64,000 nucleotides of DNA, taken from positions 49,662,001-49,726,000 of the forward strand of contig CM060733.1 of assembly GCA_030704615.1 (NCBI GenBank), written 5' to 3'. The notes beneath the pieces are model-generated. The model saw nothing but the letters and a program-made list of their open reading frames with translations, made no database searches and was not told the DNA's origin. The position numbers and the translations under genes were made by a program. Position 1 is the first letter of the stretch; every line of letters begins with the position of its first letter. Shown here in pieces: positions 6,101 to 63,113 of this stretch. This DNA is from Takakia lepidozioides (taxonomy: Eukaryota > Plantae > Bryophyta).

Positions 6101-9100
6101 CAGACGATGCGCAGTTATAGAGTCTTATGAAAGCATCAAGCATGTAATCAAGAGAATTGTCAGGGATGATACTGAAGAACACCAGATATTCTTGGCAATT
6201 TTTGAAGAGATTGATACTTCCATCCTCCAGGGGAGGTTTACAGAAACCTTTGCGCTGTATGAGCTCCCTCAAATCCACAAGAGCATATTAGCCCTCCTCA
6301 CCGTTCTTCTAAAACGTCCCACCCCAAAAGATTTGCAGAAGGTGACTTGGTCTGGTGCCTTATCTCGATTGCTTGAAGCTTTCTGTGAGGAAGATGTGCC
6401 TGCTCGTAGCCGTCCAAACCACCATGACTGACAAGGGGGTGTCTTGGTGTGTAGGTGGTGGATGCCTTGCAGAACCTATATGATGTGGTATTGCGGGATT
6501 TTCCAAGAGATGCTGGGGTCCAGGAGGATATCAGAGCACGCGCTGCATACCCACATAACAACAGAGAGGTGCTGCTGTTCACGGAGGCAGTGGAACTGCC
6601 TGACACTGAGGATGAGCCCTTCTTCAAACAACTGCAGCGCCTGCACACTACCCTAAGCACCAAGGAGGCACTACTGAATGTTCCCAGGGGTTTGGAGGCC
6701 AGACGCCGTATTTCCTTCTTCAGCAACTCCCTGTTCATGACCATGCCACGTGCACCGCAGGTATTTACTGTTTGAAATCTGTGCAGGGAAAAAGTATGTG
6801 TAGTGCATGGATTTCAAATTCATAAGGCTGCCAGATTTTGGTGGCATGTGTACTCTATCCCTCGATTCTAGCTGTCTGCATTTGGTCCTTTCAACCTGAG
6901 GTCTCATCCTTGGCATCTCCTCATCTCTTCTGAGTGGTCATCTGTAAGGTGTTGGTTCCAGGGCAGATGCTGATGATGTGAAGTGGATAATGTTGTAGGT
7001 TGACAAAATGCTGGCTTTCAGTGTTTTGACCCCATACTACAGCGAGGAAGTTATTTATACCAAGCAGCAGTTGCGCGAAGAAAATGAGGATGGTGTTAGC
7101 ACCTTATTTTATCTGCAAAAGATTTTCCCAGGTTCATCTCCTATTGATTTACAGGTGCTCGGAATTGTTTTCTTAATAGGTACATTCTGTGAGATGTTTT
7201 CCTCACTTATCCTATCACTGGTTGCCTTCAGATGACTGGAAGAATTTTCTGGAGCGCATGGGAAAAGAGGGTCTCAAAGAGAAAGACTTGTGGGAGACAG
7301 ATGATGCATTTCAACTTCGGATGTGGGCTTCATATCGAGGACAGACACTTGCACGCACTGTGCGTGGTATGATGTACTACGAAAGGTTGGTTCTATGCTG
7401 ACGAAAGTATTGTTGCTAAGGGCATGACGAAGGCCTTTCCAGCCTGTACTTAGTCTGGATCCCTAAATAGGCAGTCTTATCTTGGCCAATGGCTTCAGCT
7501 CACGTCCCAGCTCCAGGGATGTCTTGCACAGAACTCTCTGCCATTTTGAGCTGTGTACCTGTCGGAATTTTTCTTCCTTTCTGTCCTTCCTATAAAGTAC
7601 CATTTCATTTCATTTCATTTCCTTTTTGTCCACCTCATTGCCATTCCTTTCTTGTGCCAGGGCGCTTGAGTTGCAAGCCTTTTTGGACACAGCATCAGAG
7701 GTTGAGGTGTTGGGCTATCGTGAGCTATTGGATCGAGCTTCAAGTATGACTAGTGAGGGGTCCTTTGGGCGGCTGCCCCAAAACATCTCACCATCAAATT
7801 CTGACTCTGCGGATAGCGACAAAAAGCAGCAGGAGCTTGCAACTGCTGCCATGAAGTTCACATATGTGGTGACTTGCCAAATATATGGATCACAGAAGCA
7901 AAAAGGCGACAATCGTGCCAGAGATATCTTGCATTTGATGAAGACATACAAATCTCTCCGGATTGCTTATATTGATGAAGTTCCAGCTGGGAGGGATTCT
8001 AAGCAATACTATTCTGTCTTGGTCAAGTATGACCCGATTGTGCAGGCGGAGGTGGAAATATACAGAATTATGCTACCAGGACCTATGAAGCTGGGAGAAG
8101 GGAAACCAGAGAATCAGAATCATGCTATTATCTTTACTAGGGGTGATGCTCTCCAAACAATAGACATGAACCAGGTATCTGGTTGTGTTTGACACATGTG
8201 AGCCAAGGTGTTGTGTATTTGCTGCTGCAGCTTGCCTTCTCACACTGCCTTCTTTGTCTTTGCAATTCTGGCTTTTATATTATGAGAACGTTATGCCTGG
8301 ATGTACTCATATTTACATGCTGTATGCTGAGGCAGGAACATTATTTTGAGGAGGCAATCAAGATGCGGAATCTGCTTCAGGAGTTCAATCAGTCTCGTGG
8401 AGTTCGGAAACCCACAATCTTGGGAGTCCGAGAGCATGTCTTCACTGGGTCTGTGTCATCGTTGGCCTGGTTTATGTCGGCCCAAGAGACAAGTTTTGTT
8501 ACCCTTGGCCAACGGGTCCTTGCCAATCCTCTGAAAGTGCGGATGCATTATGGGCATCCAGATGTTTTTGATCGATTGTGGTTTCTTTCTCGTGGAGGTA
8601 TTAGCAAAGCATCACGAACGATCAACATCAGCGAGGACATATTTGCAGGGTTTAATTGTACCTTGCGTGGTGGCACTGTCACCCACCATGAATACATCCA
8701 GGTCATCTGTCTTTACCAAGACCGGACTTAGTGGTCATTGAATGAAGCTTTTGTTGGATGCTTTTAGAAAGGTGAACCATTAAGCCTACCAAAAACTTTT
8801 CATAACTTCCAGACTGCACTCAATGGCATATTCTATTCTGATCCTCTGATCAAATGAAGTAATTATATGACTCCTCAGCTGCAGGAGGGGAACTGGTTAT
8901 TCAGAGTTTGCAAGTAAGGTCATGCATGAGTGAGCAGTTCGGGTGTGCTTTGGTTCTGAAAGGCCTTTGTTTCTAAGCAAGGATTGATTGACTATGGCAG
9001 GCTGGCAAGGGACGGGATGTGGGGCTGAACCAGATTTCACTATTTGAAGCAAAAGTGGCTAGTGGCAATGGGGAGCAGGTCTTAAGTCGGGATGTGTACC

Positions 9101-10603
9101 GCCTCGGTCACCGCCTGGATTTCTTTCGAATGCTCTCATTCTATTACAGTACGGTTGGATTTTTTATAAATAACATGATGATTGTCCTGACTGTTTACTC
9201 CTTTCTCTATGGCCGCGTGTACTTGGCCTTAAGTGGGGTGGAGGCTTCAATAACAAGTGCCTCCAATGCTCTGAACAACTCAGCACTGACGGCCATCTTG
9301 AATCAGCAGTTAGTTGTGCAGTTGGGGTTGCTGACTGCTCTGCCCATGGTTGTGGAAAATGCTTTAGAGCATGGCTTCACGAGGGCTATCTGGGAATTTT
9401 GCACCATGCAGTTGCAGTTGGCATCGGTCTTTTTTACATTCTCCATGGGCACTCGCACTCATTTCTTTGGCCGTACCCTCCTCCATGGTGGCGCAAAGGT
9501 GTGCTTCTTGCACTTCATTGTGTTATAGGATTCTTGTTACCGCTTTGACAATGGTTCCACTGTTGCAGTGAGTGCATATTGATCTCTTTTGTTCGGAATG
9601 GTATCTTGCAAACTTGATGTTAATCCTGTTGTGTGGGACTTCGGTTGTGCAGTATAGGGCAACCGGGCGTGGCTTTGTTGTGAGGCATGAAAGATTTGCT
9701 GAGAATTATAGGCTTTACTCCAGGAGCCACTTCGTCAAAGCAGTTGAGCTTGTTATACTACTGACATTGTATTCAGCCTATGGGGTCGCCACCTCAACTG
9801 CAACTTACATCCTTGTGACAATTACCAGCTGGTTCTTGGCACTCTCCTGGCTTATGGCTCCTTTCATTTTCAACCCCTCGGGCTTTGATTGGCTGAAAAC
9901 AGTGGATGATTATGATGACTTCATGAACTGGCTGTGGTACAAGGGGGGTGTTTTCGTGAAAGCAGAGCAAAGTTGGGAGGTTTGGTGGGGTGAGGAACAA
10001 TCCCATCTGCGCACCACTGGCTTGTGGGGCAAGCTGCTGGAAATTGTACTGGACTTGCGTTTCTTCTTCTTCCAGTACGGCATTGTGTACCAGCTTGGCA
10101 TTGCCAGCAAAAACAAGAGCATTTTGGTCTACCTGATCTCCTGGAGTTATGTGTTCGTAGCTGGGTTGTTCCACTTGGTCCTTTCCACTGCCAATGAGCG
10201 CTATGCTGCCAAACGCCATGGCCTCTACCGGCTCATTCAAGCTCTCCTTATCTCCCTCATTGTTGTGATTCTTGCGCTTCTGCTGGTGCTGACTAATTTA
10301 AAGATAGTGGACCTTCTTACCAGCTTGCTCGCGTTTATGCCGACTGGCTGGGCTATTATCCAGATTTGCCTTGTGTTGAAGACCCCCTTTTTGGAGAACA
10401 CAAGGGCATGGGGGACAGTGGTTGCTGTGGCACGCTTGTATGAGCTGGGCATGGCACTTGTAGTCATGCTCCCTGTTGCACTGCTCTCATGGCTGCCAGG
10501 TTTCCAGGCAATGCAGACAAGGATTCTCTTCAATGAAGCGTTCAGCCGGGGCCTTCAGATGACTCGTATTGTGGCCGGTAAAAGATCCAGTCCTGGACTA
10601 TAA
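163..10603 (+). CDS. CALS: Callose synthase (1,3-beta-glucan synthase, GT48), 5'-partial, GSL1/GSL5 (CalS11/12)-like
   Basis: GT-AG exons about 163-215, 838-898, 1125-1206, 1530-1573, 1885-1971, 2300-2394, 5008-5092, 5205-5296, 5783-5864, 6021-6341, 6455-6760, 6999-7131, 7232-7385, 7661-8174, 8336-8701, 9001-9498, 9653-10603, with compatible phases. Motifs: [84 protein letters not shown]. The start lies upstream of the window. Confidence 0.97.
3289..3664 (-). mobile_element. 5'-truncated copy of non-LTR retrotransposon family A (3' end including CCHC region) in a callose synthase intron
   Basis: Reverse complement of the 3' end of the 45030-47650 element. Encodes [19 protein letters not shown]. 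Flanked by a perfect 20-bp direct repeat CCCTTCTTGGGGGACTTAGA at 3269-3288 and 3665-3684. Confidence 0.93.
4165..4215 (+). repeat. Repeat family B 3'-end motif (hairpin AAAGCTC-TTT-GAGCTTT)
   Basis: Similar to 21005-21069 and 24848-24890 (TGTC..A.AAGCTCT.TGAGCTTTCCGCGG..GTTA.AAAG). Confidence 0.6.
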
Positions 10604-11608
10604 GGACAGTGACTTCCTCTAGGAACTTGCCTCCGTGGTGACTTCAGCAAACCTTGGTGGGCAAAGATAGCAACTTTCAGAACTGCCTTTGAGACGTCAC
10701 TATCATGTCAGTTTGACTCCGAAGTGTATATGGCTGCAGCATGAGCAGTCTGTTATCTGATTGGATGGGCTATCCTTACAATGAAGGTTAAAATCATTGT
10801 AAAGTTGAGATTCAAGTGTAGGGACTGCAGTTGGGCCTTATCCTTGAGATGATTATGGACACACATCCAAGATCTTGTTGCAGCAATTTTCCAGATGTCA
10901 CTGGGGTTAGGCAGGGCGAATATATGTAGAGCGATACCTGCATTTGTATAGCACACTTGTCCACTGCCCTGGACACATGTCCTCTGTAATGTCCTCTGCA
11001 AGCTGACAGAGTTCTGAAATTTTGGATTTCTATTTCACACTTCCTATAGTAGAATTTCTCCCCAGCTGGCTGTTTGCCTGCCGGGTTGTATTTCTCTGAG
11101 AAATATCCAACTAGCAGAGGTTCTTACTTGATAGGGGATTCTGCTGGGATGTTCTGGTTCCTTACCGAGGAGGACCCATTTTTCTAAGTTGAATGCTTTC
11201 CTGGCAGTTTCCTGGCAGTATCTGCTATAGAAAGAACCTCTGATTTTTTCATTGTTTTTACTTGCAAAGTCCCCTCCTGGACATTATGCAGTTTCCTTTC
11301 CTGACTCCAAAATGTACAGTGATTCTGCAGATTTGAAACTACAAATTTCAATAGTCGCTAAGAAGGACAGAGAAGGATCTTCCCTGTGCCCCCAATGAAT
11401 TCAGAAGTCACTTTAAAAGATGGAGGTATATGTCAGTGCACTAGATGAGTATAACCCTAATAATGAAGCTCAATGAAGAAAATATGGCCTTTTGTCTTTC
11501 TCAATGGAAAGCAGCAAAACAAACACAAAAAGTGAAGGATGTGGGCGAACGCAAGCAAGAGGTATATTGGCGTGTAAAGCGCACAGCGTGAGCAAAGGAA
11601 GTGTGGAG

Positions 11609-17370
<5,762 letters not shown>

Positions 17371-30761: not shown

Positions 30762-32780
30762 TTGCAATGTAGACTATGCATGTGTGTGTTCGTCGGGCAT
30801 AGCCAAGATGTAGGTGGAGGGATGGGAGGATGCTTACTCAGGGAGCACCGGGTTCCATCGATGTATTGGATTAGGACTAGCCGTTTGCATGGATTAAACT
30901 GGGTTTGGTTGTATCGATTCTCTCTAGTTTTTGTGGAGATCATGGTGCTGTGGCCAGCGGGGTGTAAAGCAGGAAGGATGAGTGAAGCTGCGAGTACAAG
31001 CAGCCAGGGGACATGCCCCCTCGATTTTTCAGTGTTGCAGAAGTTCCCTTACGTAGCGCAGGAGGCCAAGTCGCCTGACCAGCAGGTCCAATGTCTAGCG
31101 CTTAACGACGGGCTAGAGATGGTGCAAGCAGAGTATCTGCGACAAACCGGATTTTTTTTGGTCCCCAACAACACAGCCTCCGATTGTGTGCAGGCTTATG
31201 AGAGCGAGTTGCAATCCCAGGGGGTGACTGTCAATCTTACCAGCTTGTGTAATTACTATCCATACTCCTTGGCCCGAGGTCACGACAATTGTCAGGGCAT
31301 TCAGTCGGACACAGATCTCGTTCGATTGCTTCCAGCTTCACTTGTGGCGAATGTCAACAGCACATGTAATGGAGTTCTTGCATCCGGGAACAATCAGGAC
31401 GTTCTTTGCAGTGCCTGCCTCAAACAAGTGTTGACGATGTCTGCGAAATTGCAGACAGTAGGGAATGGAAGCACTGTGGGTTGCCACAATTACTCGAGTA
31501 TCTATGCAGGAGGTGTTGCCAATCGAGCTGGACCGGTGGATCCCAACACTGCGACATGCTTATTCTTTATAAGGTCGGAGGCGAAAAGCCGCCGTAGCCT
31601 GACCATTTTATACATTGCAGTAGGAGCTGGAATCATCCTGTTGCTGAGCTCGGGGGTGGCACTGTTTGTGTATCTGCGTTTCAGGCAACGCAAGATTGCG
31701 GAGCGAAAGGCCTTTATCAAACGTAACACTGATATGCTTGAAGGATCCATGCGACCCGATGGAGGCCTGGTGTGGTTTACGATGGAGGAGATCAAGGCAG
31801 CTACTCACAATTTTGCAAGGGAGGCAATAATCGGTTCAGGTGGTTTCGGCAATGTGTACAAGGGTGTTTTACCAGATGGGTCGGAAATTGCAGTCAAGAG
31901 GTTCAAGAATTGCTCACCTGCAGGAGATGCCGAATTTGTCCATGAGGTGCAGATGATATCCAGTGTTCGGCACCGCCATCTCGTGGGCCTTAAAGGATGC
32001 TGTGTGGACAGCGGGGGAGTGACAGAAGGTCACCAGCGCATTATAGTATACGAGTTCGTGCGCAATGGTAGTCTCTATGACTTCCTCTTCAATCCTAAGA
32101 AACCCAGTCTGGACTGGCCGACGCGCCAGAAGATTGCTACTGGCATGGCAAAGGGCATCCATTATTTGCACCATGGAGCGGAGCCCGCCATCATACACAG
32201 AGATATCAAAGCCAGCAACATCCTGCTTGATGCGGACTTCAATGCACAGGTAGCAGACTTCGGACTCGCAAAGTTCACTCCAGAAGGTATGACCCACATG
32301 ACTACTCAGGTGGCTGGCACATTCGGCTACGTTGCACCTGAGTATGCTCTCTATGGGCAGCTCACTGAGCGGAGTGATGTCTACAGCTTTGGAGTCGTTT
32401 TGTTAGAACTTATCAGTGGGCGCAAGGCCTTGACCTCACCCTCCAGTTTTACACTCATCACAGATTGGGCTTGGGCCTTGGTGAAGAGTGGAAACTGGTC
32501 TGATGTAGTAGATGAGAGGATGGAGCAGAAAGGCCCTGCAGAAGACATGGAAAGATTTGTGTTGGTGGCTCTTCTGTGTGCGCATCCTCAGGTTGCTTGT
32601 AGGCCAACCATTTACCAAGCCCTCAGCATTTTGGAGAATGACCAGCAGCTGCCACCCATTCCTGATCGTGGTATCCCATTGACATCTGACAGAGGTGAGA
32701 TCGAGAGTGTTGTAGGTAAACTGTCCAGCGATGGGGGCTTCCAGTCCTTCACTTCTTCTGAGAGTAGTTTAGCACGATAA
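30762..32780 (+). CDS. RKF3: Intronless receptor-like Ser/Thr kinase with a Cys-rich (SPARK-type) ectodomain, RKF3-like
   Basis: Cys-rich ectodomain (CPLDF...C...C...YAGGVANRAGP..C), TM segment ILYIAVGAGIILLLSSGVALFVY, kinase motifs GSGGFGNVYKG, AVKRFKNCS, GHQRIIV, HRDIKASNILL, DFG, APE. The true ATG is probably downstream of the ORF start (about 30819-30861). Confidence 0.9.
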   Translation: MQCRLCMCVFVGHSQDVGGGMGGCLLREHRVPSMYWIRTSRLHGLNWVWLYRFSLVFVEIMVLWPAGCKAGRMSEAASTSSQGTCPLDFSVLQKFPYVAQEAKSPDQQVQCLALNDGLEMVQAEYLRQTGFFLVPNNTASDCVQAYESELQSQGVTVNLTSLCNYYPYSLARGHDNCQGIQSDTDLVRLLPASLVANVNSTCNGVLASGNNQDVLCSACLKQVLTMSAKLQTVGNGSTVGCHNYSSIYAGGVANRAGPVDPNTATCLFFIRSEAKSRRSLTILYIAVGAGIILLLSSGVALFVYLRFRQRKIAERKAFIKRNTDMLEGSMRPDGGLVWFTMEEIKAATHNFAREAIIGSGGFGNVYKGVLPDGSEIAVKRFKNCSPAGDAEFVHEVQMISSVRHRHLVGLKGCCVDSGGVTEGHQRIIVYEFVRNGSLYDFLFNPKKPSLDWPTRQKIATGMAKGIHYLHHGAEPAIIHRDIKASNILLDADFNAQVADFGLAKFTPEGMTHMTTQVAGTFGYVAPEYALYGQLTERSDVYSFGVVLLELISGRKALTSPSSFTLITDWAWALVKSGNWSDVVDERMEQKGPAEDMERFVLVALLCAHPQVACRPTIYQALSILENDQQLPPIPDRGIPLTSDRGEIESVVGKLSSDGGFQSFTSSESSLAR

Positions 32781-42944: not shown

Positions 42945-45900
42945 ATGCCGGTACCTTTCTTTCTTTTGGTAATTCGTGGGGCGGGTTCCCTGATTAGACG
43001 AGGGGGTCATTCTTGGGAGTTTTCGCGGAGATTGAGGAGGAATATGTGAAAGTGGATGCTCTGTTTACCAGCGGTTCCAGTTGTTTTAGAGAATTGTTTA
43101 CTGACTCATGCTAGATGGTTGGAAGGTGATTCCCGTCTGTCAGTTTACTTGTAACCTGGTATGACGTGTCTGACTCCTAGACTTGTGTGGAATGGTAATG
43201 TTTGCAGACACGTACTGTTCAAGTTAGCAATCTTTCAACGAATGCGAAAGAGCACGACCTACGAGAATTATTCTCCTTCTCTGGGGAGGCTGAGCATGTT
43301 GAACTACAGAGGTTAGTCCGGTACTGCACAGAGAGAGGTTACTGCTGCCATGTTATGACAAGATATGAATGATTAAATGAAAAATTAGAAATCAAAGCAA
43401 CGATGAAGCCTCACTTGCTCCTATCCCACCAAGAGCCACAAACAGTAGGTGGTGGAATAGCATTCTTTGTTGGCCTCACCTAGTTGTATCCATGTACACC
43501 AAGAAAGATAGGACAATTGAGCAAAGTCTAAGTGACAATCAAACATAACGGCCTTGCAAAGCCCTTGCATGTATATCAATGCATGAGGTACCAAGGAAAA
43601 TCTGTTAGCTCATGCCCTTTACCTGAATGTTGCTTGAGGAAGAGGCCATTTCTGTCAATCTCTAGTTTCAGCCATCCATTGATAGAGCCTTCCTTCCTTG
43701 AGGAATGCAGACTGAGCTGCTTCTCTTCTTATCCGACACCTTCATGGAAAGTTTTAGGTGAAGAGATCATGCACAGTACAGAATCACCAACTCGAGCCTT
43801 TTTATGAAGTCAAGTTGGCATCTGGTGGCATCTCTAGAAACCCTCACAATTGAGAGAGGTCTCAGGTTTGCATGAGGAAGGTCTTACAATCACTGAAGCC
43901 TTAAAATCCAGATCCCTGGCCCTTCACATAAGCAGCAACCTGCTGTGTGTGAGCAGTCCAAAAATTAGATCCCAGCAGGGCCAGGGCTTTAGGCTCAGCC
44001 TCAAGATTTTGAAAGTTGGTGAACAGAGGTGCAGGAACCTTGATGTTCCTGAAGAGGGTCATTCTTTGGTGAGAATAGCCTGGACAATGTATCAGAAAAT
44101 GGATATTGTCTTTCAGGTTGCCCGCACATCGGGCAATTACAATCCCCTATCTTATTCTTGAGAGAGAGCGAGAGAGAGAGGACTACAGCAGAAGCCAGTA
44201 AACGAGAGCTACATCCGATTGCAATACAAGGTTCATTTATCCTAGTCTTTTCTTAGCGAGCTTGAGCTGCTTCTCCTCTCCTAGCCTTGCTGGCCTAATG
44301 TGAGTTTGTGGTTCCCTATCAGAGATGGGGACTGGTCGCAGGTTGCTTATGTGACTTTCAAGGATGTGGATGCGTCGGACACTGCCCTTCTTCTGTCGGT
44401 GAGTTTGAAATTAACTTTAGCCAAAGTTGTTTCGATGCTTGTATTTGGCTAGGGCTCAAATTATTAATGAATATTGGTTCCGCACTTTTGGTTTGGTGAG
44501 GCTTGCACGCACTTAGGATGTGGTCATCTGATTCAGTTACTTTATTGGTGTAACCACAATAACTGGCCTAGTCATATATTCAGGTCCTATATGAAAATGG
44601 TAGAGTTGTTTGATTGAGTTCATTATAGTGATCAGTGTCACAGAGGGTGAGTTGATGAAGTCTGCCTGCTATGACTGGCAGGGTGCGACACTGTTGGATC
44701 GATTGGTGAACATCACTCCTGTGGAAGAGCCTGAGTGGACAGCAGGTGGAACTACTACTGCATGGGAGCAGAGCAGTACAGGGTCTGAGGTATGCTCCTT
44801 CAGACTTGGCTGAATCATGCAGATAACATATCTCGAGTATGCCATATTATGCTGCTTGTTTTGGCTGTATCCCAAATGGATATCAGTGTTCAAGGATGTG
44901 AATCTGTTTTAGGTTTGCGCTGGAAAAGCCTTGCATCTGATGTCTAGAACACCAAGTTTTGGATCATCTGATGCAAGGTTTGGAGAGTTTTCTTTCAGAA
45001 GAAAACTGGAAACAGATTTGCAGCCTTGAACCATTTGTTCGTCCTAGCAGTACAGCCAGAAAACACTTCTGGAACCTGCAATCAGTTTGCCAATGTGTTG
45101 ATCGACAGACCTGATATTGGTACCTCTGACCACTTCCTGGTTTGGACAGAGCTCAAAAGGTGTTTTCCCAACACCAAGAGATCTGTGAAACGTTCGATTC
45201 GGAAGTGGCGCATAGAAGAATTCCATAATGAGGAGGTCAAGGCTGAGTACGTCCAGGCCTTGCAAGAGGCTCTCCCTCATTTTGTCCAATCGCTCCAAGA
45301 ACTTCAGTCTCGCTCTGACAACGCAAGAAATGAAGTCGAAAGAGCAGTGGACTCTTGGGAGAGTTTCGTTTCCTCCGTGGCTGACAAGATCATTGGGAGG
45401 AAACTAAGTGTCTGCGGTAGAGCTGTTAATTGGTGGACCAATGAGATTAAACTCAAGATAGCTGAGAGACGAGCCCTCTATAAAGAATGCTGCAATTTGA
45501 AAACCAACAGAGAATTGTGGGCGAGGTACTACCAGCTCCGTAAAGATATCAATCGGCTTGTTAGGTCTCAGAAGAAATTACACTGGGACAAGTTATACAG
45601 TGAAATAAACTCAAACCACCATGGTGGTAATGACAAGAAATTCTGGTTGGCCCTTCAACGTTTGTACAAGCCGAAAAACGGTCAGCAAGTACAAGCGCTG
45701 AAGACTACTAAAGGTGCATTGGTGACTTCATCGGTTGACATTGTCAAAACCTTTGAAACTCACTACAGTATCCTTGGCAGAACTTCTAGGTCTAACAGTG
45801 AGGGGTCTTCTGCTGAATGGAGGGACACAGTTGGAAAAACTGTTCCTATGATTCAAAACAGCCCTGATGAACTGGAGTATATTTCAATGGCTTATAACAC

Positions 45901-48900
45901 TCCCATTAGTTCTTCTGAGATTGTGGAAGCAATTGAAGTACACGTCTCGAGGTTGATCTGGAGTCTAGAGGTTGTTTCCATGAAGGCCAAGCTGGCTTTC
46001 GGCAAAACAGGGGCTGTGTGGATCATATCTTCACTCTATAAGCCAGATTATCCAGGGAAGGAAAAAAGAAGGGAAACCCACTTATGTTTTTCCCTGGATG
46101 TCAAAAAGGCTTATGACACAGTGTGGAGAGATGGCCTATGGTTCCGCCTCTGGTCTTGTGGGATCAAGGGAAAGATGTGGAGAGTTGTCCACAACTTGTA
46201 TGCTCACACCAAAAGCTGTGTCACTGTTAACGGACAGAAGTCCAACTTCTTTGACATAGACCAAGGTGTAGCTCAAGGATGTACTCTCTCCCCTCTGCTC
46301 TTCAATGTTTTTATCAATCAACTCCTCGAGGATGTGGAAAGTGAGGGATTTGGGTTAAGGGTGGGTGATACCACCATACCAGCCCTTATGTTTGCGGATG
46401 ACTTCGCAGGCATAGGGGAGACTCCAACCAATCTCCAGGAGTTGATTGATTGCGCGAAGAGATACTTTGATCTTTGGGGGCTAGAGGCTAATGTCAGCAA
46501 ATGTGCAGTGGTAGCATTCAACGACAGAGGAGAGGGAGGAAGTGATCTTAAGTGGCAGTGGGGTAGCCAAGAGATCCCGGTCCTCCCTTCCTACACTTAC
46601 CTGGGCGTTGAGTTTTCCTCCAATTGTAATTGGGATGCACATATCCGGAAAGTTGTTCAAACTGGCAAGGGCAAAGCTCTGGGGCTCACTAAATTTTTCC
46701 ACTGCAGAGGGGTCAACTCTGAGGTTAAGAAAACCATGCTTTGTCGCGTTATTAGACCTGCCTTGGAGTACGGATCTGCAATATGGGTTGATAACTCCAA
46801 CCAGGCTAAGTCTCTAGAATCCATTCAAGTGGGGGTGCTTAAGGAGTGTATGTCAGCATGCTCCAAAACAGCCAATGTGGCTGTTCGGGGTGGGTTTGGC
46901 ATTCCGTCCTTAAGCTCCCGACGAGATGAATTCAAGGTCAGATGGTGGGGTCAGCTGCAACATATGCCCAACACCAGATATCCTAAGTTAGTCGACTCTA
47001 TATCTTGGAAACTGGACCGCCCTGTCAAACAGGCTAAGTCCTGGCAGAAGAGAGTAGAAGAGATTCTCAAGGACCTGGACCTGGATCCGCAAGTCTTGAC
47101 CCTGCTGGATAAATCTGACTTAGAGGCTGTAGTGTCCTCAGCCATGTCTGTTGCCATGAGATTGTCTGATGAAAATGAAGTTAGGCAGAAAACTTCCCTG
47201 AACTTGTTTCCAGTCTGTGACATGGGGGAGGACATCTTGGATGACCTCAAGGGTCTACCCACTCTCGGCACTAGACTGAAGACAGTATTCATTTTCTGAT
47301 ACACTGTCCGGGGTTCTCTCACCAAAGAGGCGCTCTCTTCAAATCTATTAATGGAATTGTGCCTGTACCCCTGTTTACCAACTTTGAAAGTCTCGAGGCT
47401 GAGCCAAAAGCCCAGGCCCTCCTGAGGCCTAGTTTTTGGGCAAATCACACACAGCAGATTGATGCTTGTGTGAAGGGATTTCTAGAGGATATCTGGAAAA
47501 CCCGGATTAATTCTATATATGAAGGTAAGTCTTACTACCAACGTCAGCCCCTGACAGAGGTAGGTTTTGTCCCTTTTGTTCCCGCTCAAACTGGGCGCGG
47601 GGTCAATGGCCACAAGGCTATGGCAAACAACGTCTTATGAGTACAATCTTTTGTCATGAGGTATCCCTACCTTGTCCACAGGCATCTCTAACTGATGGGT
47701 CAGAGGTATTCAGTTCTCAAGTATGTTATGAGCACCTTTTACTGAATCATGAGAACACTCAGGATCCTGTCACAGCTTATGAATGCGCCTAGTGCAAAAC
47801 GCGCTTCATTCTAAAGCTGCAAACCTTGCGAAAGATCACGAAGTGACTCCTGTTCCAAAATTACTAAAGTACATCATACGACATAAGTAGCTTTTATGAA
47901 AAGTTAATTCTTTTCACTCTAGACTCACAAGCGAGCTTATCAGATCTCTGCAACTGTGCTTACCACATCTCTAGTTTTGCTCTGAAACAACTCATTTGTT
48001 TTTTGCAACATGGTTTTAGACTCTGGATACGGTAACATATGTATGCATTGCTTCAAACAATATTGTGGACACAAGTTGACAAAGAAGCATTGCAAGCTCA
48101 CTCGAGAAGCGTTTGGCACTTGAAGAGAACTCTTAAAGCTTTGAATCAATGTTCTGGAAACTATACCACACTTTTGACTCAAGATCTCTTTAATTTTGCC
48201 CAGGTTTGCCTTGTTCAACAAGTGTGGCCACCCCCTAACGATGATCGGGAAACCACCCTGGATGTCATCTTTTTCCATGGATTCCAGTTTGGAAAGGAAA
48301 GCAGTGTTTCACAGCACACATGGGTGCATCGTGACAATCATGAACTCTCCTGGCCAGTGAAGTGGCTGCCAGAAGACCTGGAAGGAACAGTGCGTGTTCT
48401 ACTCGTATCTCATGGTGCAGATGTTAGACATTCCAACATCCAAGCTATTGACGACTTTGGCAGGAGGTTGCAGCAAAGCTTAGTCAGGTACCTTGCTGGA
48501 ATGTGAAGGCAGATTCGGAGCCTAGCTCCTAGTCCTCGATCTTATCCACCTAGATGTTGAAAGGAAATGGTGAGGGTTAGCTGTTCAGAACAGGATCTGG
48601 AAATGTCTATGCACATTTTGGTGTCCAAGATCAAAATCTGATATTGCTTGATTCCTGTTCATGTGCAGTTCATCTCGTTCCAGTTTTGGATGGCAAAAAC
48701 CAATTGTGCTTGTTGGCCATGGCTACGGAGGTTTGGCTGTGAAGAGCTTAGTGGTACATACTGCAAGGACTGAAACCTTGCCATGTGCGAATGAACTGGT
48801 CAAGGAGGCTGCTGAGAATGCAAAAGCATTCTTATCAAATCTCCGAGGCATTGCATACTATGCTGTTCCCCATTCCGCAATGAACTGGGGAAGTTTTGGT

Positions 48901-51853
48901 AAATTGGAGCCCTCAGGAAATATACAACACGACCTGATTGAGCGTTTATCAACAGAATTTGAGGGAGTTATTTGTAGACTTCAAATCCACATCTTGGCTT
49001 TCGGAGAGGGCAAACCAACACAAAATTGGGTACGTTCTCTGGAGTTTTTCATAATGACAAACCAAGAAATGCTGCAGAGTATTGGTACTAATAAAATTTA
49101 CTAATTGGATAGGATCATGATGGAAGGCATTTTATGCTAGGTGTCAAGTAGTGCAGTATTTTAGGGTTAGCTAGGTGTACGTGCTGCTTCAACATTAACA
49201 CTGACTGGAGAATTTTTCCCTTCTGAGAGGTTGAATTGCTTACTTTCCATCACATGTGGAGAACACAGACCTATGGTAAACCTCCCTGCACAAGCAATGA
49301 TGCACAGTGCAACGATGCCGTGCAGATGAATCAGAAGCTGAATTGTGTCATCTATGGTCTTAAGTGGTTTAGATATCTGGCTGCCTTTTATATAACAACT
49401 CTTTGAGGTTCAAGAAAGTGTTACTACTCCAGTGGTTGAAAAGATGAATTTTCTATCTCGTAGGGTTGGATTGTGCCGTATGAGTCTGCCATAAGCTTAT
49501 CTGGCTGTAACAATTACAAAGTGGAGGAGTCGGATCATCTGGATATCACGTGACCTCCTTCCAGAAAACATATCATATATGACAAATTGTTGATGCTGCT
49601 GAAGATTTGCCAAAAACCACCGGTACGTCCTCATGTCAGTAGTGGACATTTTATCTCCTCGCCATATTTGTCCCTCACTTGTGTTATCATTAATGTGTCC
49701 CTGTATTCCACCGATGTAATCTGGATTTTGCAGCATAGTGATGACTAATGCGCAACACCTTCCACTGAGCTCTAGGTGAGCAATATCTTCCTTATGCTAC
49801 AGGCTATCCTGCTGCAATCAATCTTGCAATCTGACCTTGTGAAATGTGTCCTACAACGTCTCTTCTCAGCTTTAGTGCCCATGGTTTTTTGTAGATTGTG
49901 TTCTTAGCATATTTGCATATTGTGCATATGTTCTAATTTTTATCTGGTCACTGGAGTGCAGGGTGATGTGAACTTTGCTCTAATGATCTCTCAACTTGAA
50001 GGAGGGTGCCCAGAGGACTACAACAACATAACTGAGTTGTTCCTCGAGGTATGAATCAATGGATGATGACCATAAGTATATTCTATTCACTAATCTTCAC
50101 CGGAACTTGAGGCTTAAAAGTGGAACCTATTGATCCGGAGTTTGTGTTTTGCAGCGCATGATGATCAGGGAGGCAATTGCTTTTCTTCTGGATGTTTTGA
50201 AGCCTAACCTTCCAGAGCATGCCATGCTTCAAACTAAGGTAGAGTCAGCTCTGACTCTTACAATGTGCAGTGCAGATGGACTTGCAACCTGTAACCTGCA
50301 ACCTGCAACCTGTGACCGCTCTGTTGGTTTCCTGTTCTTTCCCCTTGCTATGGTGTGCATCTTGATTATCCTTCTATGACCTTGTTACTAGTCCCCCCCC
50401 ACTTTACATAGCTACCTTGCACGTACTTAGTACTTACCTGTAGATATGATCGACAAGGTCATGTCAATCCACTGGACAATGCGGCTGACATGTGTAAATG
50501 AATGTTGTTGGTTATGCAGGTCTTGAAGATCAGTCTGGTCGCGTCCCCCAGCATAGCTGATTCAATTTTGGCAAAGGGCATGTTCAGCCATTATGACCGT
50601 CCTCAAATTGCTGAGCTCTGTCAGAAAGCTGGTCTTTACATGCATGCCCTTCAGGTCTTATTTCTGCTTTTGCACTCTTGCAGTTCTCTGCTCATCATAC
50701 TTCAATCTGTTAATTTTGTTGATCTACACTGGTGCGTCTTGACTCAGGGCCGGAATATACTTTCCATTAGGCCTGAGTGCACCTGCTCTTGAGGAACAGG
50801 AAATATCCTGAATACACTGACTGAAAGCGGAGACCTGCTATCGGGAGGATGCATACATCATCCTTGCCCTGGAGGTCAAACAGTCACTTTTATGTCCATG
50901 CAAATAAAGTTTCTAATGATCCTTTCTTGTGCAGTTGAACCCAGAAAATGCGCCTTTGGTGGTTGGGCAATTGCTGGATGATTGCCGCCCTGAGGATTTC
51001 ATCAAGGACTTTATCTTGTCTGTCCACTCTCTACTGCCAGTGGAGGCACTGGTTGACGAATGCGAGAAGAGGTAATAAATTGTCCGGATCTTTATGTCAT
51101 TATTAATCTGTTTGTTTTCTCCCCACATGATGTCTATGTCACAGTCAATTCTCAGGTTATGCGCAAGATGAAAATGTATGGAAAGAGGGCACATTACTGA
51201 CTTTTTAATTCCATGTGGAAGCTGTCTGTTGTCTCAGGATGAATCAAACTAACAGTTTGATGGGTTGGACAGGAACCAGTTGGGATTGCTGACTCAGGTC
51301 TTAGAGCATCTTGTGAGTGAAGGGAGCGAAGGAGTGCATGCACATAATGCATTGGGGAAGATCATTGTTGATACAAACGAAGATCCAGAGCTCTTTCTGA
51401 CCAGAAACCATTACTATGACTCTAAGGTCATTGGTAAATATTGTGAGACAAAGGATTGCACACTTGAAGTAATTGCATATAGACGTGGTCAATGTGATGA
51501 TGAGCTTGTTGATGTCACCAACAAGCACACGCTCTTCAAGATTCAGGCCAGGTACATCCCAACTCTATCTCCCGTCATTTGTGATTTTGTCTTGTGTTTT
51601 GTGTGATGTCTTAGAAAAGATAAAGAAATTACCTGACTACATCTTGTTGGCGCTTCTTAGGTATGTGGTGGAGCGCATGGATCCTGGCCTGTGGAAAAAG
51701 GTTATGCACCCAGAGTATCCAGAATACAGGAAGCAGCTTACTCTTGAGGTGTTGTCTATTGTTCTACCAGAGAGCAAGAACCGAGAGCAGGTGTTAGCCC
51801 TGTTAGCCACTTTGAAGGCACACTTGCCCCATGAGTTAGTTGAGCTTTTATAG
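42945..51853 (+). CDS. Chimeric gene: BPA1-like RRM + alpha/beta-hydrolase (Ser>Gly) + clathrin heavy chain fragment; in-frame TGA at 49551-49553, so possibly a young pseudogene
   Basis: Exons 42945-42950, 43208-43311, 44323-44398, 44682-44789 (RRM); 47682-47705 (24-nt microexon); 48204-48487, 48669-49029, 49464-49622 (hydrolase); 49962-50048, 50155-50238, 50520-50654, 50935-51071, 51273-51551, 51661-51853 (clathrin heavy chain). All introns are GT-AG and phase-compatible. Joining into one transcript is inferred. Confidence 0.72.
43915..44150 (-). mobile_element. Degenerate internal 3' fragment of family A beside a (GA)n tract
   Basis: Similar to 3450-3660 (CCCTTCACA..AGCA.CAA.CTGCTGTGTGTGA, GGCTCAGCCTC.AGA.TTT.AAAGTTGGT, TATCAGAAAATG). 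Confidence 0.8.
45030..47650 (+). mobile_element. Longest copy of non-LTR retrotransposon family A (APE C-terminus + RT + CCHC remnant), 5'-truncated and degenerate; RTE/RTEX-like
   Basis: SDH endonuclease motif at about 45125. RT motifs [42 protein letters not shown]. The ORF stop (TGA 47638-47640) lies about 10 nt from the element end. No poly(A). No target duplication found. Confidence 0.95.
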
Positions 51854-51919
51854 TCAAGAATGTTTTTCAAAACTCTGCCTTGAGTGGTAATCACCTCTAA
51901 AATACTCTTTCTCACCATC
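49962..51919 (+). pseudogene. CHC: Diverged, internally deleted clathrin heavy chain segment (3' module of the chimeric gene)
   Basis: [104 protein letters not shown]. Similarity continues past the TAG in a shifted frame (KNVFQNSALSGN). Confidence 0.9.
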
Positions 51920-51987
51920 TTTCCGCTCAAACTGGGCGCGGGGTCAATGGCCACAAGGCTACGGCAAACAACATCTTATGAGTACAT
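51920..51987 (+). mobile_element. 68-bp 3'-terminal insertion of family A
   Basis: Matches about 47578-47646. Perfect 14-bp target duplication TCTTTCTCACCATC at 51906-51919 and 51988-52001. Confidence 0.93.
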
Positions 51988-52107
51988 TCTTTCTCACCAT
52001 CAATTACAGTGGTGGCATCGAACGACCATTGGAAGGGAGGTGGGGATCTCAAATGGAAACGGGGGAAGGAAGAGAGGCCCTGTGTCCCTTTCTACACTGT
52101 CCCTCCC

Positions 52108-52510
52108 TTCTGAAGTCAAAAGGACCATGCTTTGCTATGTGATTAGGCCTGCTTTGGAGTACGCATCAGCCGTTCGAGTTGACAACTCCAACCATGCCAA
52201 GTCCAGGAATGCATCCAGGTTGGGGCGCTCTAAGAGTATATATTAGCATGCTCCAGAACAGCTATGTGGCTGTTCCGGTGTAGTTTGGCATACTTCCTTT
52301 GAGCTCTCCACGGGATGGGTTCAAGGTCAGATGGTGGGGTTGGTGGAACAGAATGCCTAACACCAGACACCTAAGATAATCAACTCTCTTTCTCGGAAAC
52401 AAGACTACTATTAAACAGGTAGAAGCGGTTTTTAAGGGTCTGGATATCAGCTAAAGCCACACCACTGTCACAAAGGTAGTTTCTGTTCCCTTTTGTTGTG
52501 CCAACCAGGG
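52108..52510 (+). mobile_element. Degenerate fragment of family A (post-RT region joined to the near-3' end)
   Basis: Similar to 46718-47090 ([20 protein letters not shown]; TTCAAGGTCAGATGGTGGGG) and to about 47550-47595. Confidence 0.85.
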
Positions 52511-53603: not shown

Positions 53604-53676
53604 TGGGTATAGCAGGATTTGAACCTGCGACCATTAAGTTAAAAGCCTAATGCTCTACCAACTAAGCTATACACCC
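53604..53676 (-). tRNA. trnK: tRNA-Lys(UUU), plant mitochondrial type, within a NUMT
   Basis: 73-nt cloverleaf GGGTGTATAGCTTAGTTGGTAGAGCATTAGGC-TTTTAAC-TTAATGGTCGCAGGTTCAAATCCTGCTATACCCA with anticodon UUU. Resembles native land-plant mitochondrial trnK. Confidence 0.93.
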
Positions 53677-53841
53677 AAAGAGTCTTGATTATGAGGCCGG
53701 ACATCCATTATTATGTAATTGTAATTGGGCGAAAAAATCGTGAAAAAAACAAAAAAAAATAACCTGAAATGCGAGCCGTGAACAGCCGAGCGTATCCAAG
53801 GCGTAGCGAAAAAGAAATATATTATTCTTTTTTGCAGCAAG

Positions 53842-54226
53842 AAATCACCGTTGGATACTTTAAAACCAGGAATATTGACCATTTCATAATTGACACAAAT
53901 CTCTTTATGACTTATTAGCTGCCTTGCTTGAAAAATAGTTGAACGAGAATTAGGACGAACCGGAATAACGTCCAATCTTTTTTCTATATCAAATAACAAA
54001 CTGTTTTTTTTATCTAGATAAGTGTGTGTTTTAGACCTTTGCCTCTTTCTAATGGGTAAATTTCCATAAAAAAGGGACAACTTTTGTATAGTTTGTAATT
54101 GTTTGGAAAAGTCAGATTGTTTTTTATTTGTTTTTCTTCGAAGCTTCAAAATAATGGCTTTTTGTCTTTGAGTAAGTTTTTTAGTCTGCAAAACATTTTC
54201 TGAAATTCGACGACAATTTTTAAATC
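53842..54226 (-). pseudogene. rps4: Mitochondrial rps4 fragment (NUMT), truncated at both ends
   Basis: AT-rich. Reads FKNCRRISENVLQTKKLT...KKQSDFSKQLQTIQKLSLFYGNLPI...IEKRLDVIPVRPNSRSTIFQARQLISHKEICVN...NIPGFKVSNGD, i.e. short bryophyte-type mitochondrial S4. Confidence 0.92.
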
Positions 54227-58700: not shown

Positions 58701-61700
58701 TGAAAGCAAACTGTATGAGCAGACTCACCAAGGCCTCGACACCACCAGCAGCTGCAATGGCCTCGCGATTCCTATCGTCAAAAGAGAGATTCCACAGAGC
58801 TCCAGCTGCCTCTTGCCTGTGATTGAAAAAGAACTCACCCTCAGCTTTTGCACAAGAAAGGATACGCATATACTATTCCAGTTAAACTGATGCTAAGACT
58901 GAACACATGCTTATAACTCTCACAGAAGAACAGAAAGCTGTTTACGCTTTTCCCAGCCCAGGACATCTGCATACCAGTGGCGCCCAAACGTTACAAATAT
59001 CAATGGGCTAGGGTAAATCCATACATCACCAGAGGAAAAACTGCACGACGCAGAATCTCCATGACAAAATAGGCCAACTTATCTTCAGAGGGAAATTAAA
59101 GTGAAGTAACACCAGGCCAACCTACCTGACGCCTTCATGAGTAGAGCAAGTGAGATGAACTAGAGCTTCAAGGGCACCCGCCTCTTGACCTACTGCAGCA
59201 TTGTTACCATTGCTGTCACCATGTGCTGCAAGGTTAGCCAAAGCACGAGCAGCCTGCCACAGAAAGGTACAGAGGTACATTCAGTAACACTCTTCCAAGA
59301 AACCCATTGTCTTCAGGAAAGGGAAACTTAAGCAGGGTTTTCTTCACAACAGCAAACACTCTGAATGATTGGGAGTGATCCACATCTCTCAACGATGCTC
59401 AAAAAAGGAGAAATTATCTTGTCCTTTGAGGACAGTGACAAGCTTGAATCTGACAGACTACAGATATCACATTATTTGTCCACACCCGTCATCCTTCAAA
59501 CAGAATTAGACAAACACCTGTTCTTGCACCCCCTCATGATTGCAGAAGCGAGCAAGATTGACAAGGGCATGGACGCCACCAGCCATTGCAACCTCCATGC
59601 TGCACTTATCGTCTGCTGCCAGGTTTGCTAATGCACCTGCTGCTCTCTCCTGCTATCCAAATGATCCCAAAGAACAAGACAAGCATCAGCAAACTTATAC
59701 ACAAGATGGAGGTAGGTGCAAGACTTGATAAAGGCAATACAGACTGACTGGGACACATCCATGAGACTAGAAAGCCAGAGCAGTGATGAATCTCAGCTTC
59801 TCCCAGATCATACTACTAACTTCCATACTACGAATGGTTAACTGCAAGTGAGAGAGCCATGTCTGATGGTTATGATCTAATATGGCAGACTGAAGAGTAC
59901 TCACCAGAACCCCTTCTCCACCAGAAGGCCACTTGAAAGCTAGATCCACCAATGCCTCGATAGCACCTGCTCCAGCTATAGCACCCTAGCAAAATCCATA
60001 GTATATATTATGGAACATCAGAAGCTATTTATGTTATGGAGTGAAATTTTCAGAACAAAAAACGCGAAAAATAATAGACCCCAAAACTTGAACAAGCACA
60101 GCGACAAATAGTCGTAAGCACTGACCCCTGACTCAACCAAAAGGCACCAATTGTTACCTTGTGCTCTTCACCAACAGAGAGGTTCCAGAGCCCACCAGCT
60201 GCCTCTTCCGCAACCCAACGGTTGGGAGATCTTGCCAGGGTTGCCAATATGCTGATCCCACCCTCCATGGCCACAGTCTTTGCAACTTCAGCATTCACGG
60301 ACAAGTTTGCTATAGCCTGCACATAGCAAAGAAACTGGAGTCGGAAGCTGCACAGCTACTGTAGAAATCAAGAGGTCGAGTATCACTCTTGCAGCCAACA
60401 CAAAACATAGATTCAGCAAGACCAGCTGTACTGCACTTTGGTAGTGTTACATTATCACACATCCTGTATCAACACAAAACTTCCTTTGCTTGCAAACTCT
60501 CAAAATAAACACTCAATGACAAATCTAACCAGTGATAAAGTAACTCAGTGGTGTGCCTCAAATGACTGCAAACTTGCTATTTCCTCTACTGCCAGACAAA
60601 GTACCTTTGCTGCTTCTGACTGCACACCTTCCCGGCAAGACTTTGCCAGATCCAAGAGGAATGCAATGCCACCTCCGTGCATTACTGCTTCCGCTCTTGC
60701 TGAATCCACAGTTGCATTCTCATCGTCAATGACCACAAATGTGGCCAGCGCAGTAGCTGCTCTTTCTTGCACATCCTCCTGCAGACTTTGCACAAGGCTT
60801 AACATCACCGCTGTACCTTGCTTTAGCCAGAAACTGTCCAAGCCAGGGATAGTTATCTCTGCAATTTTCAGTAATGCGTGAGAAAGCATCCACTCTATCC
60901 ATTTCGTAAGTTCCAAATCGCCACTCTGGCCTTGTGACGATTGAGGTGCTCCACAAACCACAGCTTGTTTTGAATCAGGAACTAAAGCATTCATACAAGA
61001 TAAAGCTGTCAATCCCTTGACAAGGTCGGCAAAACGTGAGAGCAAAATAGTGGATTTGGTAGAGTATGCAAGAGTGTCGCTGCCATCTTCCAGAACGGGG
61101 CAATTGAGCGCACACAAAACCCTTAACTCGGGTGCTGCAAGCAGCCTTGTGACAGCAGTTGGGGTGATATCAGTTCCAGAGACATCAAGGCCTGTCAAAT
61201 GAGGAATTGTGCTCCACAGTTGTCCTGCGATGTTCCAGGAAATGCATCTAGATCCTGCAACTGACAGAAACCGAAGGCTAGTCGCAGCAGATAAAGCCCC
61301 CTCATCTACCGAACTACATTCCAAAAACCCCAATTCCGTAAGGCCTTGGCAATGCTTCACCAGGGCTCCAATGGCGTCCCCGTCGACATCCCTCACACCT
61401 GATAGGCGCAGGCACCTCAGCTTTGGGCAGCACAAGGCTATTACTTTTATTGCCTCACTAGTGATTCTTTCACAGTCAGGCCCAAGTTGCAGGCTTTCTA
61501 GGGCCGAATGCCTTGCGACAACCATGGAGAGGGATGCATCTGAAAGATCTCTGCAACAATCCCCACTAAGAGCACGCAGCTCTCTTGCCTGTAGACCAAC
61601 AATAGCACTGGCAGCACCACCACCACGAAACCTGAGGCGTTGAAGCTTAGCACAACGTCCTGAGAGAGAGGCAACCATATCTGAGTCCAATGTGTGAGCC

Positions 61701-62038
61701 CGGAGATCTAGTGAAGTCCATAGGGAAGAGGAGGAAGCAAGTGAACGCCACGTCTTACAGACAGATGCCAAACTTGCCCTATCTCTGTGATTCAAAAGTG
61801 TGAACAAGCCAACCAATGTATCATCAGGAAGACATGTCCAATCTGCCTCCCGGCCTCCGTTCGAAAAGATCCAATTGCTGTTGCCTCCAGTCGCTAGAGT
61901 TTCAGAACAGAACACAGAGTCACCTCTGGGATGACCTGCTGGTCGGGCTTTCTTGTTGGGAATTGGTTTATCTTGATCGTCCAAAACTTTGTGCCGCCGT
62001 TTCTGACTATCATCAGCTGTTCCAACAATATGCCTCAT
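55755..62038 (-). CDS. ARABIDILLO: ARABIDILLO-like F-box/LRR/Armadillo-repeat protein
   Basis: Large first coding exon 62038-60605 (NLS-like KRRHK..KKAR, F-box DWTCLPDDT..RDRASLASVCKTW, LRRs). About 11 further ARM exons follow (DVQERAATALATF, AEEAAGGLWNLS, QEAAGALWNLSFDDRNRE, QERAAGALWGLSVSEAN, FMAALALAYMFDGR, FTMPGGRHAMHHASLLQ...FARVVLRNLEH). Confidence 0.95.
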
Positions 62039-62788
62039 CGCACTTCCTGCCACACGCTTAGACACTCATGGAAGGGGATGAATTGAAAGCACAAAGCTCC
62101 CCCTATGTACGTCGGTGAGGTACCTCGCCTAACCCTAGGAGTCACGCACAGACAGAATCAGGAACGCATATAAACCAAAACCAATCACCCTCAAGGCCAA
62201 TCGAATCCTTCCACACTCGCCATACATGTCGAAAACCAATTTAATGCATCCTCTCTCGGTGTCTATGTGCCTCCCATAAATTTATCGTATTGACACACCC
62301 CGTGACAATTCCAGTGTCGAGAACCGGAATAACTCATGGAGTTGTCGGCTGCCAAGATGGCGCAGTAACTGTCAGTGCGTTGCAAACATTACCTCCACAC
62401 CTCCTCCATGTCTGCACATGTGTGCAGACGATGACTGCCTAGACAGACACCACAATATGGATATATGGCCTTCTGAAACCCTCTGTATTCTCCTGAAACT
62501 CTCTGTAACTATAAATTCTAAGGCCACAGAGCAAACCTCATGTTTGCATAGCGAAATTGCATGCAACCTCACATGCAGACACAACCACACCGCTAGCGCT
62601 TCTTAGCGCAGATATCCGCTACATCAAACAACGTCAAATCCATCTCTTCTATCTCTTCAATCACTTGAATCTCTTCAACACAAATCCCAGATTGAAGCGA
62701 GCAGGGAAGGGATGGCAGGGGGCAAGCCTGCCCTCCAGCACCACAATAAGCACAAGAATCCCGCTGCTTGCCTGCGATCCCGGCCTTG

Positions 62789-63113
62789 AACCGACCGGCG
62801 CTGCGACGGGTAGCCCCCCGCCCGCTCTACCCTAACTACTCTCCCTGTTGTGAACGACGGGTTCTGCGGCGGGTGGCCCCCTGCCCGCTCTACCCTACCT
62901 ACTCTTCCTGTAGTTAACGACCCAATCTGCGGCGGGTAGCCCATCCTAACTACTCTTCCCGTAGTTAACGACCAAAGTTTCGACGGGTGGACCCCTGCCC
63001 GCGGGTACCCTAACCACCCTTCCTGTTGTTAACGACCGGCGCTGCTACGGGTGGCCCCCGCCCGCGATACTGTACCCTAACTACTCATCCCGTTGCTAAC
63101 GACCTCGCGCTGC
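62789..63113. repeat. GC-rich minisatellite, about 5.3 units of about 51-67 bp
   Basis: Consensus approximately AACGAC-N~10-CGGGTRGCCCCCYGCCCGCTCTACCCTAACTACTCTTCCTGTWGTT. Confidence 0.92.

Follow-up and report, generated by a model that had tools for sequence, protein, structure and literature searches.

An exon-by-exon analysis suggests two head-to-tail units, a LINE-split RRM gene and a stop-interrupted hydrolase-clathrin chimera, at a Takakia lepidozioides locus

Whether three protein modules that follow one another in Takakia lepidozioides DNA belong to a single gene was the question raised by a 64,000-nt stretch of this genome (the window). Within positions 42945-51853, exons for an RNA recognition motif (RRM) domain (exons 1-4), a microexon (exon 5), exons for an alpha/beta-hydrolase (exons 6-8) and exons for clathrin heavy chain (CHC) repeats (exons 9-14) succeed one another on the plus strand, on which the exons, the genes and the large LINE described below lie unless otherwise stated. 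An earlier note had joined them into one three-way RRM-hydrolase-clathrin gene, built by exon shuffling and possibly carrying host proteins as integrated decoys. Searches were run exon by exon. All 14 exons were found; their borders are canonical (AG/GT), their phases agree, and the splice dinucleotides are intact at 26 of 26 sites. Every module boundary lies in phase 0, as had been stated. The single in-frame model likewise exists; with both stops counted and with exon 13 ending at 51551, it has about 685 codons rather than about 678, and its sole internal stop, a TGA at 49551-49553, is reached after about 356 codons and not after 350. This TGA lies within the conserved part of the hydrolase and 5' of every clathrin exon. 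Because it cuts the frame before any clathrin codon, the proposed three-way protein is impossible from the sequence, and putative splicing could at most yield a product of about 356 residues made of the RRM and a hydrolase lacking its nucleophile serine. Moreover, the RRM frame closes at a TAG of its own (47787-47789) once a long interspersed nuclear element (LINE) and one copy of its target site are taken out. The reading preferred here, with a probability of roughly 0.6, is that of two separate units arranged head to tail, namely an RRM gene split by a LINE and, downstream of it, a promoterless, stop-interrupted hydrolase-clathrin chimera that would be independent of the RRM gene.

The upstream unit would be a small RRM gene of about four coding exons. 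Its putative first coding exon, an ATG and eight codons in front of a donor GT (42945-42968), is preceded by pyrimidine-rich, UTR-like sequence; a shorter form, ATG CCG followed directly by the GT, is equally possible. Exon 2 (43208-43311) holds the RNP-type motif region and was assigned by its splice sites and a match to RRM_1 of Pfam, which for this exon alone reached E=5.6e-4 and 20.2 bits, just below the gathering score of 20.7 bits. Splice sites also define exon 3 (44323-44398). Exon 4 starts at 44682 and had been given a donor after 44789. The analysis of its borders and of the inserted element instead extends it to 44793, as the 5' part of the last coding exon, and places the 3' part at 47665-47789, inside an open frame of 47529-47789 and including the microexon (47682-47705). 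Without the LINE and one duplicate, exon 4 stays in frame across the microexon and for 43 further codons to the TAG at 47787-47789. On the simplest reading of the sequence, exon 4 and the microexon are thus two parts of one terminal coding exon that was split by a 5'-truncated LINE, and the donor and microexon of the 14-exon model would be pieces of that former exon. The RRM gene probably ends about 415 nt upstream of the hydrolase exons. The microexon itself carries little weight: the interval from which it was chosen holds 262 stop-free, phase-0 AG..GT cassettes, of which 18 pass stricter splice criteria, and the frame from exon 4 to exon 6 is kept even when it is skipped. Its 8 codons do not stand out statistically.

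The LINE that separates the two parts of the exon (44794-47649, 2.86 kb) had been overlooked in the earlier note. It was recognized by a reverse transcriptase open reading frame of 775 codons (44972-47296; RVT_1, E=1.5e-23, Pfam), by a 3' end common to other copies and by a match resembling a target-site duplication (TSD). Comparison of five copies gave the 3' terminus ...GAGTACAWTCT, so that the large copy ends at position 47649. The TSD-like match, GTC-TGAGGTAT (44783-44793) against GTCATGAGGTAT (47653-47664), agrees at 11 of 12 positions and stands at both ends of the element; random 20-mers of the window, compared with the same 281-nt target, reached its score in 3% of trials (empirical p of about 0.03), which is consistent with a genuine target-site duplication. 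The LINE and one copy of the duplicate together measure 2871 nt, a multiple of three. As the 775-codon frame is still open and the 3' UTR is 91-94% identical to those of other copies, the insertion appears to be young, and the last coding exon of the RRM gene would have been split only recently.

The same LINE family is frequent in this DNA. At least nine 3' tails occur in the window, of about 70-370 nt each (at 3286, 14851, 15044, 15437, 22750, 24783, 26525, 47579 and 51920), and this abundance of short tails suggests either heavy 5' truncation or a derivative resembling a short interspersed nuclear element (SINE) that uses this tail. An inverted fragment of the LINE 3' end, 74-78% identical, lies in the second RRM intron, before exon 3 (43920-44153), and is adjoined by a (GA)n-like tract at about 44150-44180. 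Downstream of the clathrin exons, repeat comparison identified a 3' tail at 51920-51992 and an older LINE fragment at 52009-52400, both on the plus strand. The idea that LINE, hydrolase-clathrin unit and downstream tail had moved as one retrotransposed composite was rejected, as the TSD-like match flanks the LINE alone.

The downstream unit begins with three hydrolase exons, none of which gave a Pfam match. Exon 6 (48204-48487) was found by tblastn with residues 35-120 of a Sphagnum jensenii relative that combines hydrolase and NB-ARC domains (P0004; E=7e-14), and by the position of its acceptor it is equivalent to exon 2 of genes for hydrolase-type nucleotide-binding leucine-rich repeat receptors (Hyd-NLRs). 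For exon 7 (48669-49029), which was also matched by tblastn, a phmmer search of 1.84 billion representative proteins yielded 89 relatives (best E=3e-16, 46-49% identity), the longer of which are proteins with a hydrolase and an NB-ARC domain, in part followed by leucine-rich repeats (LRRs), such as CAK9870248.1 of Sphagnum jensenii. Exon 8 (49464-49622), the last hydrolase exon and the one that contains the TGA, was delimited by alignments to P0004 and P0003 and by the position of its donor. The earlier assignment of the hydrolase to the type of bryophyte hydrolase-NLRs is borne out by these matches to N-terminal domains of hydrolase and NB-ARC proteins. Hyd-NLRs are a class of non-flowering plants (PMC11218826). 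The rest of such a receptor was not detected, since tblastn of five hydrolase and NB-ARC/LRR proteins against the whole window matched exons 6-8 only. The proposed integrated decoys would consequently have no sensor to which they could be attached.

Both ends of the hydrolase module coincide with introns of an authentic Hyd-NLR gene. In the Sphagnum gene (L022), one intron follows a 30-residue exon 1 and lies exactly at the start of exon 6, and another lies directly after the residues to which the end of exon 8 aligns; the module therefore consists of whole Hyd-NLR exons cut at introns, with exon 1 absent. The frame of exon 6 is opened by an in-frame ATG at 48039, which the earlier note does not mention; given that the exon 6 acceptor stands at the conserved intron position, this ATG is probably incidental. 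Exon 7 carries the nucleophile elbow as GHGYGG instead of G-H-S-x-G-G, with glycine in place of the serine; serine is found at this position in 59 and glycine in 9 of 77 relatives. The TGA in exon 8 aligns with the K/R of a conserved H..(V/I)C(K/R)P motif (CK in ten relatives, CR in three), and in the alignments to P0004 and P0003 homology runs on for 22 residues beyond it. A stop at a conserved position within continuing homology is best explained as a nonsense lesion, which plausibly arose from CGA at a CpG site. About a quarter of the hydrolase relatives (P0001, P0012, P0013 and others) have G, C, N, K or D instead of the nucleophile serine, and judged from these sequences loss of catalysis seems to be recurrent in the NLR-type hydrolase family.

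The clathrin module comprises exons 9-11 (49962-50048, 50155-50238 and 50520-50654) and exons 12-14 (50935-51071, 51273-51551 and 51661-51853, with the TAG at 51851-51853), all identified by homology and intron positions. The Clathrin family PF00637 (CHCR repeats) matched exon 11 (E=1.2e-4) and exon 13 (E=2.8e-16). In PDB matches exon 11 corresponds to residues 585-628 of bovine CHC and exons 12-14 to residues 807-1008, and the exons also align to a green-lineage metagenome CHC (L001). Introns interrupt authentic plant CHC genes (L020/L021, L023) at the positions that border exons 9-14, one of them directly before exon 9. This last position disposes of the idea that the exon 9 acceptor is a chance AG inside an ancestral exon. 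Instead of the full-length architecture of terminal domain, seven CHCRs and trimerisation region, two internal blocks are present, as four parental CHC exons are absent between 50654 and 50935. Exon 14 corresponds to the first part of a parental exon that exceeds 335 codons; it is brought to its end by a GAG>TAG change and a 2-nt insertion, after which about 45 nt of residual CHC homology continue out of frame (51854-51900). The LINE tail at 51920 begins 25 nt past the end of the CHC homology.

Hydrolase and clathrin exons meet in a chimeric intron (49623-49961), inside which the Hyd-NLR/CHC DNA junction is placed by the inherited splice sites on both sides. The donor after exon 8 occupies an intron position of the Sphagnum Hyd-NLR gene and the acceptor before exon 9 one of an authentic plant CHC gene, both in phase 0. 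The hydrolase-clathrin junction is real at the DNA level, and here the proposal of exon shuffling holds, with inherited phase-0 introns on both sides, while it does not extend to a three-way protein. In the mechanism that we propose, the intron that follows the hydrolase exons in a bryophyte Hyd-NLR gene would have recombined with an intron within a CHC gene, an internal CHC piece thereby taking the place of the NB-ARC-LRR part. The present unit would be a promoterless copy without exon 1, which later acquired a nonsense codon inside the conserved end of the hydrolase. Neither a second hydrolase-CHC copy within the window nor terminal inverted repeats around the unit were found.

The clathrin exons allowed us to ask whether this chimera had ever been translated. 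Among 45 fragments of authentic plant CHCs, mutual identity across exon 13 is 97.6%, and the window sequence is only 72% identical to them, with changes at 22 of the 86 columns that are conserved among authentic plant CHCs. Relative to L023, 239 ungapped CHC codons contain 59 replacements and no stop. A neutral simulation from the L023 exons to equal protein divergence (about 0.13 substitutions per site) expects 1.8-3.0 stops, with a probability of 0.05-0.15 for none. The replacements average +0.27 in the BLOSUM62 matrix, as compared with -0.44 to -0.59 in the simulation, and the observed average was reached by 0 of 800-2000 simulations at any transition bias tried. The clathrin piece therefore appears to have diverged quickly under a protein-level filter. 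Since its replacements are conservative and stops are lacking, the hydrolase-clathrin chimera was probably translated for much of its history, and coding for a protein over that time would be part of the mechanism proposed above.

Several observations weigh against the division into a LINE-split RRM gene and a formerly coding chimera. At the LINE, the 5' border found no confirmation against another copy, and the TSD-like match contains one indel and sits 3 nt past the consensus end of the element. A polymorphism or an assembly error could account for the TGA, which involves only one base. The hydrolase acceptor is inherited and presumably competent and has no upstream exon of its own, which makes splicing of the RRM exons into it conceivable. 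The neutral simulation started from an angiosperm CHC (L023) and not from the true parent gene. Finally, exon 6 and the open reading frame around exon 7 had no close or near-identical protein in the public sets, from which this genome's own proteins are apparently absent.

The inherited acceptor is the starting point of an unlikely alternative, in which a two-way gene is expressed from the RRM promoter. The LINE would be spliced out (GT at 44790 to AG at 47681) and the donor at 47706 joined to the acceptor at 48204, giving a product of about 356 residues in which the RRM is followed by the serine-less hydrolase, with the clathrin exons as 3' UTR. All splice sites needed for this are canonical and in phase, an acceptor without a first exon of its own is usable only by an upstream donor, and hydrolase domains of Marchantia Hyd-NLRs alone cause cell death in Nicotiana benthamiana (PMC11218826). 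Nevertheless, the stop removes a conserved domain end beyond which homology continues, as expected of a lesion and not of an evolved terminus, and the microexon interval offers numerous cassettes that would serve equally well. A transcript whose stop lies far upstream of several introns is also normally prone to nonsense-mediated decay, and the TGA stands in such a position. If the TGA were instead a sequencing error, a strain polymorphism or a read-through codon, one functional three-way RRM-hydrolase-clathrin gene would come back into view. It would benefit from the TGA being the only stop in about 685 model codons, from the 26 intact splice dinucleotides and from the protein-level filter on the CHC module; we consider it very improbable given a LINE that interrupts an apparently continuous RRM exon ending at a stop of its own, and given that the tblastn searches found no NB-ARC or LRR in the window.

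The opposite view, that all three pieces are non-coding debris which never formed a joint protein, is also rather improbable. They would have been brought together either by segmental duplication or by a transposon, through Helitron- or Pack-type capture or through LINE-associated transduction, and this would suit three partial genes that share one orientation and keep their introns, a stretch with at least nine LINE tails, one of them within 25 nt of the CHC remnant, and a CHC piece that lacks four exons and has a decayed end. CHC replacements far more conservative than neutral and the absence of stops from 239 codons at about 0.13 substitutions per site are difficult to reconcile with debris, as are the retention of all inherited splice sites, the lack of terminal inverted repeats flanking the unit and a TSD that belongs to the LINE alone and not to a composite element. 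A split RRM gene followed by a once-translated, now interrupted chimera thus remains the preferred reading. It could be extended, tentatively and at clearly less than even odds, to a lineage-specific, multi-copy coding family in which an NLR-type, often serine-less hydrolase is combined with a fast-evolving CHC alpha-solenoid that replaces the NB-ARC-LRR part. Copies without a first exon would then borrow exons from their host locus, here those of the RRM gene, and the present copy would have been disabled only recently.

Of this locus, the junction of hydrolase and clathrin deserves to be retained, as it shows exon shuffling in clean form, with an atypical bryophyte NLR and a core housekeeping gene as the partners. 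The three-way reading, that of an RRM-hydrolase-clathrin receptor, should be dropped. No paper dealing with Hyd-NLRs, integrated domains and clathrin together came up in a full-text literature search, and clathrin is not mentioned in the text of a bryophyte NLR survey or in those of its supplementary files that were searched. The junction of an NLR-type hydrolase with clathrin heavy chain was thus not found in the literature searched. How valuable it is hinges on whether other parts of the genome hold intact, expressed copies; such copies would show the re-use of NLR signalling domains outside NLRs, and a coding family would represent an undescribed immune-type architecture without a nucleotide-binding domain. 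The upstream unit would provide a dated example of a LINE that splits a coding exon and thereby mimics an intron and a microexon, a useful warning for gene models made from sequence only.

The surroundings of the two units contain several other genes. Exons of a callose synthase occupy positions 5000-12000 of the window (e.g. 7626-8192 and 9572-10603; Glucan_synthase PF02364, E of about 1e-37 to 1e-38), with LINE tail fragments nearby at 3286-3672. A SPARK-domain receptor-like kinase is encoded by one open frame of 672 codons, apparently intronless over 30762-32780 (SPARK E=5e-24, kinase E=8e-43). On the minus strand lie an exon of an S4-domain protein (53667-54191) and a gene for an F-box/LRR protein (60545-62065). 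The chimera is therefore located in ordinary gene space. A tandem pair of 63-nt G+C-rich units with 84% identity was noted at 62792-62917.

Comparison with known systems was made module by module. The RRM was likened by its motifs to the family of BPA1 (binding partner of ACD11), and we take this resemblance as an assumption, as the searches gave only the generic, sub-threshold RRM_1 match. No BPA1-like C-terminal exons were recognised by eye downstream on the plus strand up to position 58000. In BPA1 a conserved RNA-binding domain at the N-terminus precedes a C-terminal region that is diverse and disordered (PMC11980575), so that the lack of a recognisable 3' half is weak evidence either way. 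BPA1 and BPL proteins, as BPA1 is described there, would share with the upstream unit an RNA-binding-type domain at the N-terminus and a non-conserved tail, but the tail here is short (about 80 residues) and interrupted by the LINE. With Hyd-NLRs (the HNL class; Chia et al. 2024, PMC11218826) the chimera has in common homology over three exons and equal intron positions at both domain ends, whereas it has no NB-ARC or LRR after the hydrolase, lacks exon 1, carries glycine for the nucleophile serine and has a premature TGA in the C-terminal motif. From clathrin heavy chain it retains six exons with inherited introns and PF00637 leg repeats, yet only about 300 of some 1700 residues are present, with a four-exon internal gap and a truncated, frameshifted end, and the chimera is 72-75% identical to authentic plant CHCs, which are about 98% identical to one another. 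NLRs with integrated decoys offer the parallel of a host-protein fragment fused to an NLR-derived signalling domain, except that the NB-ARC-LRR sensor which defines that class was not found in the window by tblastn. Chimeric genes and pseudogenes that arise by intronic recombination or transposon capture differ in so far as no capturing element was identified at the hydrolase-clathrin unit. Like captured gene fragments, however, this unit lies in LINE-rich DNA, and as in such chimeras whole exons of unrelated genes are joined in it at phase-compatible introns.

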